This document shows positions 1 through 40,000 of a stretch of DNA of 64,000 bases, in pieces. Both the position numbers and the translations under genes were made by a program. Under the pieces are notes generated by a model that was not told the DNA's origin, did not search any database, and saw only the letters and a program-made list of their open reading frames with translations. Each line of letters opens with the position of its first letter. Position 1 is the first letter of the stretch. This DNA comes from Auanema rhodensis. Taxonomy: Eukaryota; Animalia; Nematoda. Location of the stretch: contig OZ059900.1 of the NCBI GenBank assembly GCA_964057225.1, positions 5,084,001-5,148,000 on the forward strand, in the 5' to 3' direction.

Positions 1-190
1 ATTCAATCAAGTTTAAAAAAAAATTTTTTTTCAATTCAGATGTTGACACTCTTTGAAAATGTGTAATAAATGTTTTGAGAGTATCGTGAAAACAAGTTGG
101 AAAAAAACTTTTTTTTGGACTTGGAAATTTTTTTTGGACTGTGAGCCATTCGCATGGCTTAATCCTTGAGGAAAGCTACAGCGCTGACAG
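1..190 (+). repeat. Representative long monomer (190 bp)
   Basis: Layout: attcaatcaagttt-A9T8-caattcagatg...caagttgg-A7CT8-ggacttggaaa-T8-ggactgtgagccattcgcatggcttaatccttgaggaaagctacagcgctgacag. The next copy starts at 191. Confidence 0.98.
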
Positions 191-203
191 ATTCAATCAA
201 GTT
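142..203 (-). pseudogene. Degenerate, internally deleted fragment of the 18S (SSU) rRNA 5' end; first full example, repeated once per monomer
   Basis: Three collinear minus-strand blocks match recalled 18S sequence. AACTTGATTGAATCTGTCAG vs general eukaryotic AACCTGGTTGATCCTGCCAG is 15/20. GCTTTCCTCAAGGATTAAGCCATGC vs GCTTGTCTCAAAGATTAAGCCATGC is 22/25. TGCGAATGGCTCA is identical to the conserved downstream motif. This is not a functional rRNA gene. Confidence 0.8.
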
Positions 204-363
204 TAAAAAAAAAATTTTTTTTTCAATTCAGATGTTGAAACTCTTTAAAAATGTGTAATAAATGTTTTGAGAGTATCGTGAAAACAAGTTGGAAAAAAAT
301 TTTTTTTTGGACTGTGAGTCATTCGCATGGCTTAATCCTTGAGGAAAGCTACAGCGCTGACAG
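191..363 (+). repeat. Representative short monomer (173 bp), lacking the 19-bp ggacttggaaatttttttt module
   Basis: gg-A7T9 is followed directly by ggactgtgag. The next anchor is at 364. Confidence 0.98.
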
Positions 364-31830: not shown

Positions 31831-32282
31831 CGTGGAAACAAGTTGGAAAAAAACTTTTTTTTGGACTTGGAAATTTTTTTTGGACTGTGAGCCATTCGCA
31901 TGGCTTAATCCTTGAGGAAAGCTACAGCGCTGACAGATTCAATCAAGTTTTAAAAAAAAAAATTTTTTTTCAATTGAGATGTTGAAACTCTTTAAAAATG
32001 TGTAATAAATGTTTTGAGAGTATCGTGAAAACAAGTTGGAAAAAAATTTTTTTTTGGTCTGTGAGCCATTCGCATGGCTTAATCCTTGAGGAAAGCTACA
32101 GCGCTGACAGATTCAATCAAGTTTGAAAAAAATTTTTTTTTTCAATTCAGATGTTGAAACTCTTTAAAAATGTGTAATGAATGTTTTGAGAGTATCGTGG
32201 AAACAAGTTGGAAAAAAATTTTTTTTTGGACTGTGAGTCATTCGCATGGCTTAATCCTTGAGGAAAGCTACAGCGCTGACAG

Positions 32283-32364
32283 ATTCAATCAAGTTTGAAA
32301 AAAAATTTTGGACTGTGAGCCATTCGCATGGCTTAATCCTTGAGGAAAGCTACAGCGCTGACAG
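32283..32364 (+). repeat. 82-bp deletion monomer (copy 1)
   Basis: Reads attcaatcaagtttg-A8T4-ggactgtgag..., and the next anchor is at 32365. Confidence 0.95.
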
Positions 32365-33632
32365 ATTCAATCAAGTTTTAAAAAAAATTTTTTTTTTTCA
32401 ATTCAGATGTTGAAACTCTTTAAAAATGTGTAATGAATGTTTTGAGAGTATCGTGAAAACAAGTTGGAAAACAATTTTTTTTTGGACTGTGAGTCATTCG
32501 CATGGCTTAATCCTTGAGGAAAGCTACAGCGCTGACAGATTCAATCAAGTTTAAAAAAAAATTTTTTTTTCAATTCAGATGTTGAAACTCTTTAAAAATG
32601 TGTAAAAAATGTTTTGAGAGTATCGTGAAAACAAGTTGGGAAAAAAATTTTTTTGGGACTTGGAAATTTTTTTTGGTCTGTGAGCCATTCGTATGGCTTA
32701 ATCCTTGAGGAAAGCTACAGCGCTGACAGATTCAATCAAGTTTAAAAAAAAATTTTTTTTTTCAATTCAGATGTTGAAACTCTTTAAGAATGTGTAAAAA
32801 ATGTTTTGAGAGTATCGTGAAAACAAGTTGGGAAAAAAATTTTTTTGGGACTTGGAAATTTTTTTTGGTCTGTGAGCCATTCGCATGGCTTAATCCTTGA
32901 GGAAAGCTACAGCGCTGACAGATTCAATCAAGTTTAAAAAAAAAATTTTTTTTTCAATTGAGATGTTGAAACTCTTTAAAAATGTGTAATAAATGTTTTG
33001 AGAGTATCGTGAAAACAAGTTGGAAAAAATTTTTTTTTTGGACTGTGAGCCATTCGCATGGCTTAATCCTTGAGGAAAGCTACAGCGCTGACAGATTCAA
33101 TCAAGTTTTAAAAAAAAAAATTTTTTTTCAATTGAGATGTTGAAACTCTTTAAAAATGTGTAATAAATGTTTTGAGAGTATCGTGAAAACAAGTTGGAAA
33201 AAAATTTTTTTGGGACTTGGAAATTTTTTTTGGACTGTGAGCCATTCGCATGGCTTAATCCTTGAGGAAAGCTACAGCGCTGACAGATTCAATCAAGTTT
33301 TAAAAAAAAATTTTTTTTTTCAATTGAGCTGTTGAAACTCTTTAAAAATGTGTAATAAATGTTTTGAGAGTATCGTGAAAACAAGTTGGAAAAAAATTTT
33401 TTTTTGGTCTGTGAGCCATTCGCATGGCTTAATCCTTGAGGAAAGCTACAGCGCTGACAGATTCAATCAAGTTTGAAAAAAATTTTTTTTTTCAATTCAG
33501 ATGTTGAAACTCTTTAAAAATGTGTAATGAATGTTTTGAGAGTATCGTGGAAACAAGTTGGAAAAAAATTTTTTTTTGGACTGTGAGTCATTCGCATGGC
33601 TTAATCCTTGAGGAAAGCTACAGCGCTGACAG

Positions 33633-33714
33633 ATTCAATCAAGTTTGAAAAAAAATTTTGGACTGTGAGCCATTCGCATGGCTTAATCCTTGAGGAAAGC
33701 TACAGCGCTGACAG
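33633..33714 (+). repeat. 82-bp deletion monomer (copy 2)
   Basis: Same junction, aagtttgaaaaaaaattttggactg. Confidence 0.95.
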
Positions 33715-34617
33715 ATTCAATCAAGTTTTAAAAAAAATTTTTTTTTTTCAATTCAGATGTTGAAACTCTTTAAAAATGTGTAATGAATGTTTTGAGAGTA
33801 TCGTGAAAACAAGTTGGAAAACAATTTTTTTTTGGACTGTGAGTCATTCGCATGGCTTAATCCTTGAGGAAAGCTACAGCGCTGACAGATTCAATCAAGT
33901 TTAAAAAAAAATTTTTTTTTCAATTCAGATGTTGAAACTCTTTAAAAATGTGTAAAAAATGTTTTGAGAGTATCGTGAAAACAAGTTGGGAAAAAAATTT
34001 TTTTGGGACTTGGAAATTTTTTTTGGTCTGTGAGCCATTCGTATGGCTTAATCCTTGAGGAAAGCTACAGCGCTGACAGATTCAATCAAGTTTAAAAAAA
34101 AATTTTTTTTTTCAATTCAGATGTTGAAACTCTTTAAGAATGTGTAAAAAATGTTTTGAGAGTATCGTGGAAACAAGTTGGAAAAAAACTTTTTTTTGGA
34201 CTTGGAAATTTTTTTTGGACTGTGAGCCATTCGCATGGCTTAATCCTTGAGGAAAGCTACAGCGCTGACAGATTCAATCAAGTTTTAAAAAAAAAAATTT
34301 TTTTTCAATTGAGATGTTGAAACTCTTTAAAAATGTGTAATAAATGTTTTGAGAGTATCGTGAAAACAAGTTGGAAAAAAATTTTTTTTTGGTCTGTGAG
34401 CCATTCGCATGGCTTAATCCTTGAGGAAAGCTACAGCGCTGACAGATTCAATCAAGTTTGAAAAAAATTTTTTTTTTCAATTCAGATGTTGAAACTCTTT
34501 AAAAATGTGTAATGAATGTTTTGAGAGTATCGTGGAAACAAGTTGGAAAAAAATTTTTTTTTGGACTGTGAGTCATTCGCATGGCTTAATCCTTGAGGAA
34601 AGCTACAGCGCTGACAG

Positions 34618-34699
34618 ATTCAATCAAGTTTGAAAAAAAATTTTGGACTGTGAGCCATTCGCATGGCTTAATCCTTGAGGAAAGCTACAGCGCTGACAG
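34618..34699 (+). repeat. 82-bp deletion monomer (copy 3)
   Basis: Same junction as copy 1. Confidence 0.95.
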
Positions 34700-35967
34700 A
34701 TTCAATCAAGTTTTAAAAAAAATTTTTTTTTTTCAATTCAGATGTTGAAACTCTTTAAAAATGTGTAATGAATGTTTTGAGAGTATCGTGAAAACAAGTT
34801 GGAAAACAATTTTTTTTTGGACTGTGAGTCATTCGCATGGCTTAATCCTTGAGGAAAGCTACAGCGCTGACAGATTCAATCAAGTTTAAAAAAAAATTTT
34901 TTTTTCAATTCAGATGTTGAAACTCTTTAAAAATGTGTAAAAAATGTTTTGAGAGTATCGTGAAAACAAGTTGGGAAAAAAATTTTTTTGGGACTTGGAA
35001 ATTTTTTTTGGTCTGTGAGCCATTCGTATGGCTTAATCCTTGAGGAAAGCTACAGCGCTGACAGATTCAATCAAGTTTAAAAAAAAATTTTTTTTTTCAA
35101 TTCAGATGTTGAAACTCTTTAAGAATGTGTAAAAAATGTTTTGAGAGTATCGTGAAAACAAGTTGGGAAAAAAATTTTTTTGGGACTTGGAAATTTTTTT
35201 TGGTCTGTGAGCCATTCGCATGGCTTAATCCTTGAGGAAAGCTACAGCGCTGACAGATTCAATCAAGTTTAAAAAAAAAATTTTTTTTTCAATTGAGATG
35301 TTGAAACTCTTTAAAAATGTGTAATAAATGTTTTGAGAGTATCGTGAAAACAAGTTGGAAAAAATTTTTTTTTTGGACTGTGAGCCATTCGCATGGCTTA
35401 ATCCTTGAGGAAAGCTACAGCGCTGACAGATTCAATCAAGTTTTAAAAAAAAAAATTTTTTTTCAATTGAGATGTTGAAACTCTTTAAAAATGTGTAATA
35501 AATGTTTTGAGAGTATCGTGAAAACAAGTTGGAAAAAAATTTTTTTGGGACTTGGAAATTTTTTTTGGACTGTGAGCCATTCGCATGGCTTAATCCTTGA
35601 GGAAAGCTACAGCGCTGACAGATTCAATCAAGTTTTAAAAAAAAATTTTTTTTTTCAATTGAGCTGTTGAAACTCTTTAAAAATGTGTAATAAATGTTTT
35701 GAGAGTATCGTGAAAACAAGTTGGAAAAAAATTTTTTTTTGGTCTGTGAGCCATTCGCATGGCTTAATCCTTGAGGAAAGCTACAGCGCTGACAGATTCA
35801 ATCAAGTTTGAAAAAAATTTTTTTTTTCAATTCAGATGTTGAAACTCTTTAAAAATGTGTAATGAATGTTTTGAGAGTATCGTGGAAACAAGTTGGAAAA
35901 AAATTTTTTTTTGGACTGTGAGTCATTCGCATGGCTTAATCCTTGAGGAAAGCTACAGCGCTGACAG

Positions 35968-36049
35968 ATTCAATCAAGTTTGAAAAAAAATTTTGGACTG
36001 TGAGCCATTCGCATGGCTTAATCCTTGAGGAAAGCTACAGCGCTGACAG
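35968..36049 (+). repeat. 82-bp deletion monomer (copy 4)
   Basis: Same junction as copy 1. Confidence 0.95.
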
Positions 36050-36968
36050 ATTCAATCAAGTTTTAAAAAAAATTTTTTTTTTTCAATTCAGATGTTGAAA
36101 CTCTTTAAAAATGTGTAATGAATGTTTTGAGAGTATCGTGAAAACAAGTTGGAAAACAATTTTTTTTTGGACTGTGAGTCATTCGCATGGCTTAATCCTT
36201 GAGGAAAGCTACAGCGCTGACAGATTCAATCAAGTTTAAAAAAAAATTTTTTTTTCAATTCAGATGTTGAAACTCTTTAAAAATGTGTAAAAAATGTTTT
36301 GAGAGTATCGTGAAAACAAGTTGGGAAAAAAATTTTTTTGGGACTTGGAAATTTTTTTTGGTCTGTGAGCCATTCGTATGGCTTAATCCTTGAGGAAAGC
36401 TACAGCGCTGACAGATTCAATCAAGTTTAAAAAAAAATTTTTTTTTTCAATTCAGATGTTGAAACTCTTTAAGAATGTGTAAAAAATGTTTTGAGAGTAT
36501 CGTGAAAACAAGTTGGAAAAAAATTTTTTTTTGGACTTGGAAATTTTTTTTGGTCTGTGAGCCATTCGCATGGCTTAATCCTTGAGGAAAGCTACAGCGC
36601 TGACAGATTCAATCAAGTTTAAAAAAAAATTTTTTTTCAATTCAGATGTTGACACTCTTTGAAAATGTGTAATAAATGTTTTGAGAGTATCGTGAAAACA
36701 AGTTGGAAAAAAACTTTTTTTTGGACTTGGAAATTTTTTTTGGACTGTGAGCCATTCGCATGGCTTAATCCTTGAGGAAAGCTACAGCGCTGACAGATTC
36801 AATCAAGTTTAAAAAAAATTTTTTTTTTCAATTCAGATGTTGAAACTCTTTAAAAATGTGTAATAAATGTTTTGAGAGTATCGTGAAAACAAGTTGGAAA
36901 AAAATTTTTTTCTGGACTGTGAGCCATTCGCATGGCTTAATCCTTGAGAAAAGCTACAGCGCTGACAG

Positions 36969-37075
36969 ATTCAATCAAGTTAAAAAAAAAAAATTTTTTT
37001 GGGACTTGGAAATTTTTTTTGGTCTGTGAGCCATTCGTATGGCTTAATCCTTGAGGAAAGCTACAGCGCTGACAG
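36969..37075 (+). repeat. 107-bp deletion monomer (single copy)
   Basis: Reads attcaatcaagtt-A12T7-gggacttgg..., with the central caattcagatg...caagttgg block absent. The next anchor is at 37076. Confidence 0.93.
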
Positions 37076-40000
37076 ATTCAATCAAGTTTAAAAAAAAAAT
37101 TTTTTTTCAATTCAGATGTTGAAACTCTTTAAAAATGTGTAATAAATGTTTTGAGAGTATCGTGAAAACAAGTTGGAAAAAAATTTTTCTTTGGACTGTG
37201 AGCCATTCGCATGGCTTAATCCTTGAGGAGAGCTACAGCGCTGACAGATTCAATCAAGTTTAAAAAAAAATTTTTTTTTTCAATTCAGATGTTGAAACTC
37301 TTTAAAAATGTGTAAAAAATGTTTTGAGAGTATCGTGAAAACAAGTTGGGAAAAAAATTTTTTTGGGACTTGAAAATTTTTTTTGGACTGTGAGCCATTC
37401 GCATGGCTTAATCCTTGAGGAAAGCTACAGCGCTGACAGATTCAATCAAGTTTTAAAAAAAATTTTTTTTTTTCAATTCAGATGTTGAAACTCTTTAAAA
37501 ATGTGTAATGAATGTTTTGAGAGTATCGTGAAAACAAGTTGGAAAACAATTTTTTTTTGGACTGTGAGTCATTCGCATGGCTTAATCCTTGAGGAAAGCT
37601 ACAGCGCTGACAGATTCAATCAAGTTTAAAAAAAAATGTTTTTTTCAATTCAGATGTTGAAACTCTTTAAAAATGTGTAAAAAATGTTTTGAGAGTATCG
37701 TGAAAACAAGTTGGGAAAAAAATTTTTTTGGGACTTGGAAATTTTTTTTGGTCTGTGAGCCATTCGTATGGCTTAATCCTTGAGGAAAGCTACAGCGCTG
37801 ACAGATTCAATCAAGTTTAAAAAAAAAAATTTTTTTTTCAATTCAGATGTTGAAACTCTTTAAAAATGTGTAATAAATGTTTTGAGAGTATCGTGAAAAC
37901 AAGTTGGAAAAAAATTTTTTTCTGGACTGTGAGCCATTCGCATGGCTTAATCCTTGAGGAAAGCTACAGCGCTGACAGATTCAATCAAGTTTAAAAAAAA
38001 AAATTTTTTTTTCAATTCAGATGTTGAAACTCTTTAAAAATGTGTAATAAATGTTTTGAGAGTATCGTGAAAACAAGTTGGAAAAAAATTTTTTTTTGGA
38101 CTGTGAGCCATTCGCATGGCTTAATCCTTGAGGAAAGCTACAGCGCTGACAGATTCAATCAAGTTTAAAAAAAAAAATTTTTTTTTAATTCAGATGTTGA
38201 AACTCTTTAAAAAGGTGTAATAAATGTTTTGAGAGTATCGTGAAAACCAGTTGGAAAAAAAATTTTTTTTGGACTGTGAGCCATTCGCATGGCTTAATCC
38301 TTGAGGAAAGCTACAGCGCTGACAGATTCAATCAAGTTAAAAAAAAAAAATTTTTTTTTAATTCAGATGTTGACACTCTTTGAAAATGTGTAATAAATGT
38401 TTTGAGAGTATCGTGAAAACAAGTTGGAAAAAAACTTTTTTTTGGACTTGGAAATTTTTTTTGGACTGTGAGCCATTCGCATGGCTTAATCCTTGAGGAA
38501 AGCTACAGCGCTGACAGATTCAATCAAGTTAAAAAAAATTTTTTTTTTCAATTCAGATGTTGAAACTCTTTAAAAATGTGTAATAAATGTTTTGAGAGTA
38601 TCGTGAAAACAAGTTGGAAAAAAATTTTTTTCTGGACTGTGAGCCATTCGCATGGCTTAATCCTTGAGGAAAGCTACAGCGCTGACAGATTCAATCAAGT
38701 TTAAAAAAAAAAATTTTTTTTTCAATTCAGATGTTGAAACTCTTTAAAAATGTGTAATAAATGTTTTGAGAGTATCGTGAAAACAAGTTGGAAAAAAATT
38801 TTTTTTTGGACTGTGAGCCATTCGCATGGCTTAATCCTTGAGGAAAGCTACAGCGCTGACAGATTCAATCAAGTTTAAAAAAAAAATTTTTTTTTTAATT
38901 CAGATGTTGAAACTCTTTAAAAAGGTGTAATAAATGTTTTGAGAGTATCGTGAAAACCAGTTGGAAAAAAAATTTTTTTTGGACTGTGAGCCATTCGCAT
39001 GGCTTAATCGTTGAGGAAAGCTACAGCGCTGACAGATTCAATCAAGTTTAAAAAAAAAATTTTTTTTTCAATTCAGATGTTGAAACTCTTTAAAAATGTG
39101 TAAAAAATGTTTTGAGAGTATCGTGAAAACAAGTTGGGAAAAAAATTTTTTTGGGACTTGGAAATTTTTTTTGGACTGTGAGCCATTCGCATGGCTTAAT
39201 CCTTGAGGAAAGCTACAGCGCTGACAGATTCAATCAAGTTTAAAAAAAAAATTTTTTTTTCAATTCAGATGTTGAAACTCTTTAAAAATGTGTAATGAAT
39301 GTTTTGAGAGTATCGTGAAAACAAGTTGGAAAAAAATTTTTTTTTGGACTGTGAGTCATTCGCATGGCTTAATCGTTGAGGAAAGCTACAGCGCTGACAG
39401 ATTCAATCAAGTTTAAAAAAAATTTTTTTTTTCAATTCAGATGTTGAAACTCTTTAAAAATGTGTAATAAATGTTTTGAGAGTATCGTGAAAACAAGTTG
39501 GAAAAAAATTTTTTTCTGGACTGTGAGCCATTCGCATGGCTTAATCCTTGAGGAAAGCTACAGCGCTGACAGATTCAATCAAGTTTAAAAAAAAAAATTT
39601 TTTTTTCAATTCAGATGTTGAAACTCTTTAAAAATGTGTAATAAATGTTTTGAGAGTATCGTGAAAACAAGTTGGAAAAAAATTTTTTTTTGGACTGTGA
39701 GCCATTCGCATGGCTTAATCCTTGAGGAAAGCTACAGCGCTGACAGATTCAATCAAGTTTAAAAAAAAATTTTTTTTTTCAATTCAGATGTTGAAACTCT
39801 TTAAAAATGTGTAATAAATGTTTCGAGAGTATCGTGAAAACAAGTTGGAAAAAAACTTTTTTTTGGACTTGGAAATTTTTTTTGGACTGTGAGCCATTCG
39901 CATGGCTTAATCCTTGAGGAAAGCTACAGCGCTGACAGATTCAATCAAGTTTAAAAAAATTTTTTTTTTCAATTCAGATGTTGAAACTCTTTAAAAATGT

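Follow-up and report, generated by a model that had tools for sequence, protein, structure and literature searches.

The window, which is the whole 64-kb stretch of DNA that was analyzed, consists entirely of one head-to-tail satellite array that is uninterrupted and non-coding. The favored reading, which is given a probability of roughly 0.8, is that the array is an rDNA-derived satellite, in which a copy of the 5'-terminal part of a nematode's 18S rRNA gene would have come to lie in an AT-rich unit, lost an internal segment, and been amplified as a non-functional relic. The array has the features of such a satellite: it is a long array of near-identical monomers, its similarity to rDNA is colinear, and within the 64-kb window, which holds no rRNA gene, it is separate from working rRNA genes. 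Satellites are usually orphans without a traceable parent. Here the parent is traceable to the nucleotide, namely a nematode-type 18S 5' end that carries a dated-looking microhomology deletion.

Architecture of the array

The following features describe the array and the part of the monomer that lies outside its 18S-like core.

1 to 64000, minus strand (18S sense): tandem satellite array with 353 cores, which overruns both ends of the window
117 to 135, plus strand: 19-bp internal duplication that sets the 192-bp 'B' monomer apart from the 173-bp 'a' monomer, as seen when the consensus sequences of the two classes (B, n = 175; a, n = 172) are compared
205 to 223, plus strand: A10-T9 tract; another tract of this kind closes the monomer, so that there are two per monomer, ~86 bp apart
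224 to 300, no strand assigned: AT-rich half of no recognizable origin, without an rDNA match, not significantly core-like, and at chance level in the Rfam control
32224 to 36076, minus strand: domain with four 82-bp core-only units (at 32224, 33574, 34559, and 35909) in 1350/985-bp higher-order repeats, from the period-82 rows of Tandem Repeats Finder (TRF), the spacing classes, and self-similarity peaks
36902 to 37107, minus strand: lone 107-bp unit at the switch from B-rich to a-rich array, from the TRF period-107 row and the class string

A core-anchor search located the 353 cores, all in a single orientation, and a 23-mer at the deletion junction described below is present in 346 copies at ≤2 mismatches, on the minus strand only, where the chance expectation is 0. 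TRF reports a period of 173 bp with 348 copies over 301–64000 and also 365-bp dimers. The spacing between cores falls into classes of 171–175 bp ('a', n = 172), 189–193 bp ('B', n = 175), 82 bp (n = 4), and 107 bp (n = 1). The monomers are ~173 or ~192 bp long with a mutual likeness of ~98%, and the GC content is even across the window at 0.30. B monomers prevail in the first half of the window and a monomers in the second. Higher-order periods vary by domain, being 936 bp at 1–9 kb, 2359 bp at 26–32 kb, 1350/985 bp at 32–37 kb, and about 710 bp at 37–46 kb, followed by the plain 173-bp period at 46–55 kb. The 82-bp units and the 107-bp unit, which together span 32224–37107, cluster exactly at the changeover from B-rich to a-rich array, and this cluster looks like a scar of unequal exchanges at the boundary of two array domains.

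Unequal exchange and gene conversion would have amplified the unit into a head-to-tail array that is 64 kb or longer. These two processes fit the presence of two length classes, the shifting higher-order repeats, the core-only units, and the uniform homogenization. The core-only units may have arisen by exchange where the monomer halves have similar ends. An 'a' monomer (e.g. 139–311) consists of halves of 86 and 87 bp that start with the same hexamer and finish in an A9-T7-10 tract. The A/T tracts are the source of the weak 86-bp half period (~60%) that TRF detects, and they occur twice per nucleosome-sized unit.

Several candidate sources of the AT-rich half were considered and rejected. It is not an older, decayed copy of the core, since after removal of homopolymers the similarity has a z of 1.0 and is reached by 347 of 2000 shuffles. 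It does not resemble known spacer or external transcribed spacer (ETS), since the ~100 kb of nematode rDNA loci compared contain nothing that matches it. Nor is it akin to the flanks of the other 18S-start copies that are seen at contig loose ends, where the similarity is not significant.

Descent of the core from nematode 18S rRNA

The core of one monomer and its blocks are located as follows.

142 to 203, minus strand: 18S-like core of one monomer, read directly and aligned to Rfam SSU_rRNA_eukarya from model position 1
152 to 203, minus strand: blocks 1 and 2, corresponding to 18S nt ~1–53, with a nematode-type helix 1 followed by the nematode-specific stretch, from Rfam positions 1–56, a 22/23 match to the L013-type 18S, and global alignment
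142 to 151, minus strand: block 3, corresponding to 18S nt ~87–96 and fused directly to block 2; the 12-mer that spans the join has its single match in the L013 rDNA unit at 18S nt 85–96

Alignments to both the Rfam model and real genes confirm that the core comes from the first ~100 bases of a nematode 18S gene, in a copy that has decayed and lost an internal segment. The match of 100–203 (minus strand) to SSU_rRNA_eukarya (RF01960) scores 22.6 bits with an E-value of 7.8e-5 when 116 nt are searched, and 19.6 bits with an E-value of 0.023 in a 4-kb search. The unique content of the array is only ~190 bp, which makes 116 nt nearly the right size of search space. The Rfam alignment covers model positions 1–117, of which only 1–56 are well aligned with high posterior, and ~90–100 are also recognizable. 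An equal-sized Rfam control with 116 nt of the AT-rich half gave no SSU match, with a best E-value of 0.25. Local alignment of the monomer to nt 1–130 of real nematode 18S genes gave scores of 56–65, while dinucleotide shuffles had a mean of 18–22 and a maximum of 37; the monomer thus stands at a z of 12–19 and its score is reached by 0 of 1000 shuffles. Block 3 occurs only once at ≤1 mismatch in the 7.9-kb L013 rDNA unit, at 18S nt 85–96, which is colinear with the other blocks. Additionally, blastn of the monomer against the ~100 kb of nematode rDNA loci gave non-trivial matches only to the 18S start (22/23) and to its spacer copies.

The comparison genes are the 18S genes of relatives, taken from metagenome contigs with a search pattern that combined the satellite's form of the helix-1 3' strand with a universal downstream motif. 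The pattern was taken from the satellite, so 21 bases match by construction; neither the matches outside the pattern (7/8 upstream and 7/7 in the gap) nor the Rfam result depends on it. Among the 29 pattern matches, 23 are exact 5' ends of nematode 18S genes, which represent about six sequence types. One of these, L013, is a complete rDNA unit in which position 1 of the Rfam SSU model falls at base 2193. The other six matches (L001, L011, L012, L017, L019, and L021) are not 18S and are chance matches in unrelated, apparently microbial contigs.

Helix 1 of the satellite has the form seen in the nematode 18S genes, and the satellite also shares with them a lineage-specific 15-base stretch that runs from this helix into a normally variable region. 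The core fits nematode 18S much better than the canonical consensus, and most of its mismatches to that consensus are accounted for by the nematode genes. This supports a nematode-type 18S, rather than a generic eukaryotic one, as the source of the core.

A sequence-only reading of the window had proposed that a fragment of the 18S 5' terminus was embedded in an AT-rich unit and amplified at least 350 times. The proposal is borne out by the 353 cores, the Rfam match, the z of 12–19, and the unique, colinear block 3. The minus-strand sequence that it quoted is present exactly at 203 to 142, and the three blocks that it matched in order to the canonical consensus, at 15/20, 22/25, and 13/13, hold against the Rfam consensus line. 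Two of the checks that it suggested agree with it: the real alignment score of 56–65 exceeds the shuffle maximum of 37 (0/1000), and the Rfam SSU search gave a match from model position 1 with an E-value of 7.8e-5. Its statement that the similarity begins right at the mature 5' end holds only to within ~3 nt, as the upstream flank is an A/T run.

The idea that an AT-rich satellite resembles the conserved primer motifs of 18S by chance is refuted and retains practically no probability. The 22.6 bits are far under the gathering score of 50, and the same monomer has several weak chance matches to other Rfam families, both of which would suit a chance resemblance. Against this, none of the 1000 shuffles comes near the observed score, the AT-rich control half gives nothing, the three blocks are colinear with the third unique in the whole rDNA unit, and the core has nematode-specific letters that lie outside the consensus used in the sequence-only reading.

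Internal deletion

The core consists of 18S nt ~1–53 and nt ~85–96, so that ~31 nt are gone, with a TGC triplet on either side of the missing stretch. According to the Rfam structure line, the lost ~31 nt are a whole hairpin. The deletion of a hairpin between short direct repeats is a signature of slippage or microhomology deletion, which is probably how this hairpin was lost. The copy of the 18S 5' terminus (nt ~1–53 and ~85–96) would have entered an AT-rich unit of about 173 bp, and the hairpin between the retained parts would have been lost via a deletion of ~31 nt between the TGC triplets. The deletion junction itself makes a 6-bp hairpin, which is the only stable element of the folded strand.

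Occurrence beyond the window

Contigs of four sequencing runs were aligned to one monomer, with 197–300 skipped as repeat; these contigs are uninformative on copy number or expression. The core is found at very high word depth, in near-identical pieces, under organism labels A, B, and C, which come from three studies and comprise the host and two further labels. Under a fourth organism label the match is only to low-complexity flank. The junction 23-mer has no match in bacterial or archaeal genomes or in viral contigs, and the spurious ORFs of the satellite are not on record among public contigs.

Loose ends of contigs from runs X1, X6, and X9, over window positions 100–197, show the 18S-like module in three contexts that are absent from the window. 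In the first, the copy stops at 18S nt ~51–52 and is followed by unrelated AT-rich DNA. In the second, the copy retains a 12-base piece of the hairpin that is lost in the satellite. In the third, a new 18S start follows directly after the core, with the satellite's unusual fourth base and the normal nematode reading further on. These copies may be spacer copies or sister satellites. In the same three runs, window position 138 is T and position 141 is C in about half of the contig depth. The genome therefore has a major sister subfamily of monomers, which is not the dominant form in the window.

Route from rDNA to satellite

One of the nematode rDNA types (L013, L002, and L027) has an intergenic spacer with two direct copies of 18S nt 4–33, which lie 184 bp apart. 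These copies (L013:1400–1613, L002:7432–7645, and L027:75–104) are 100% identical to the type's own 18S gene and sit among 39-, 38-, and 17-bp subrepeats, about 600–800 bp upstream of the 18S start. The other approximately five nematode rDNA types sampled are without 18S-start copies in the spacer. Such copies are sporadic but real outside this genome.

These spacer copies, together with the other contexts and extents of the module, suggest by a small margin over even odds that the parent of the satellite was an 18S-start repeat of the intergenic spacer of the lineage's rDNA, rather than the 18S gene itself. The 18S-start repeats associated with the spacer would form a family to which the satellite probably belongs, and its origin would then be the usual one from the intergenic spacer (IGS). 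Against a spacer origin, the AT-rich half matches neither the spacers of relatives nor the flanks of the other 18S-start copies, and the spacer copies occur in only one of approximately six types and span nt 4–33, not nt 1–96. The contrast that the sequence-only reading drew, in which an 18S 5' terminus is unusual next to satellites derived from spacers, is not supported as it was worded, because a related nematode has 18S-start copies in its spacer and because the module occurs in other contexts and extents under three organism labels.

Alternatively, the monomer may have come directly from the gene, through an rDNA unit that was eroded by successive internal deletions until the 18S start and a piece of upstream or downstream spacer became the monomer. 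This is rather unlikely. The core itself has a clean microhomology deletion, and some contigs retain part of the stretch that is lost from the satellite, both of which speak for this route. However, ETS is expected upstream of nt 1 in this case, and the similarity instead ends within ~3 nt at an A/T tract; the monomer also has no other rDNA-like sequence.

The position of this boundary also bears on an RNA-mediated origin, in which a non-LTR reverse transcriptase would have switched template onto 18S rRNA and run off at its 5' end, with tandem amplification later. The model for this is the U6-L1 chimeric retrocopies known from mammals. Such an event would predict a unit made of 18S nt 1–96, a short tail, and an A run, and the monomer resembles this in that the similarity starts no more than 3 nt from the mature 5' end and an A9-10 run lies 6 nt after the 18S part. 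SINEs derived from rRNA also exist, namely SINE28 and 5S-derived elements (PMC10946416). The A run, however, makes up one half of an A(n)T(n) tract, of which each monomer has two, and the copies in the window are tandem only, with no dispersed copies, target-site duplications, or element tail seen. Moreover, the spacer copies of the relative run from nt 4 to nt 33, which no run-off model predicts. An RNA-mediated origin is accordingly improbable.

Coding potential, RNA products, and function

The 18S fragment is a relic that has decayed, not a functioning RNA gene. Its 22.6 bits compare with a gathering score of 50 for an SSU rRNA gene, and it comprises 62 of ~1800 nt (the model has 1831 positions). 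In the whole window no Rfam family reaches its gathering score, there are no tRNAs, and there are no ORFs above 66 aa. A structured RNA was rejected on fold z-scores of −0.8 for the core and −0.9 for the whole monomer. The core differs at several positions that are constant in all sampled nematode 18S genes, as is expected of a relic. Weak Rfam matches, including TtnuCD1, mir-81, and snoZ267, are far below their thresholds and were set aside as chance matches in AT-rich DNA. The TtnuCD1 match (a Tetrahymena C/D snoRNA model) at 221–283 on the minus strand, which recurs in the repeats, is a weak, full-length, sequence-only match of 23 bits against a threshold of 70. The repeat is contained in no RNA run, which counts as weak evidence since few RNA runs exist for it. 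The sequence gives no hint of a product. The array is most likely an ordinary and probably heterochromatic satellite that is assumed to be silent, and the best-supported reading is that it does nothing sequence-specific.

Spacer repeats serve as enhancers or pairing sites in other animals, and the 18S start could have been kept as a functional module, either to bind, as DNA, a factor of the rDNA or the nucleolus, or to template small RNAs antisense to the 5' end of 18S. What speaks for such a module, which is given little probability, is that it recurs in another nematode's spacer, where it is 100% identical to that nematode's gene, and in several contexts under three organism labels. The identity in the relative is, however, expected anyway from gene conversion within the rDNA unit. 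The frequency of the consensus base is ~0.98 in the core and 0.96–0.98 elsewhere in the monomer, and with values so nearly equal the core is not visibly more constrained than the AT-rich filler. The core is also altered at several conserved 18S positions and has lost one helix, no RNA run has the repeat, and no special structure is present. A still smaller likelihood is attached to the stronger proposal that the 18S-start module is a selected cis element of nematode rDNA, whether a nucleolar, pairing, or factor-binding site or an antisense small-RNA template. If this were true, it would account for the module in the spacers of different nematodes, and the element would here have given rise to a large satellite in interaction with the rDNA or with an rRNA surveillance pathway.

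Comparison with known systems

Satellites derived from rDNA are well known, and most come from spacer subrepeats or from 5S genes. The conversion of rDNA to a satellite in which the 18S 5' terminus is the recognizable part is unusual but explicable. In the literature, no account was found of a satellite that is based on the 18S 5' terminus, and the monomer is printed in no paper that was found; two literature matches for 'fragment of the 18S' were discarded, as they concern FISH-probe methods only. The repeated sequence has two motifs that are standard 18S primer or probe sites, and at over 350 copies per 64 kb it could interfere in the host with 18S-based PCR, FISH, and estimates of rDNA copy number from read depth.

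Compared with the 18S gene (RF01960), the core keeps a recognizable helix 1 with nematode-type pairs, but it has 62 of ~1800 nt and one helix is deleted. The satellite resembles the spacer copies of the L013, L002, and L027 type in that the same end of the same gene lies in non-genic repeated DNA, and their 184-bp spacing is near the 173/192-bp monomer. In that spacer there are two copies of nt 4–33, which are identical to the gene and lie in a GC-rich context inside the rDNA unit, whereas the satellite has more than 350 copies of nt ~1–53 and ~85–96, which are diverged and lie in an AT-rich context with no rRNA gene within 64 kb.

Satellites derived from 5S rDNA and SINEs derived from rRNA (SINE3 and SINE28) are known (PMC10946416), and like these the present array is a case in which a fragment of an rRNA gene seeds a high-copy repeat. 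Unlike the 5S- and 28S-derived repeats and the dispersed SINE retrocopies, the satellite comes from 18S and is strictly tandem in the window. The tomato rDNA-derived satellite (Jo et al. 2009, PMC2679016) is an example of an IGS-derived satellite. Both it and the present satellite are tandem arrays outside working rRNA genes with a monomer that comes from part of the rDNA unit and that was expanded by segmental duplication and unequal recombination, while the neighboring rDNA was lost. The tomato monomer preserves a spacer subrepeat (PMC2679016), whereas here the only recognizable part is the 18S 5' coding end and the link to the spacer is inferred.
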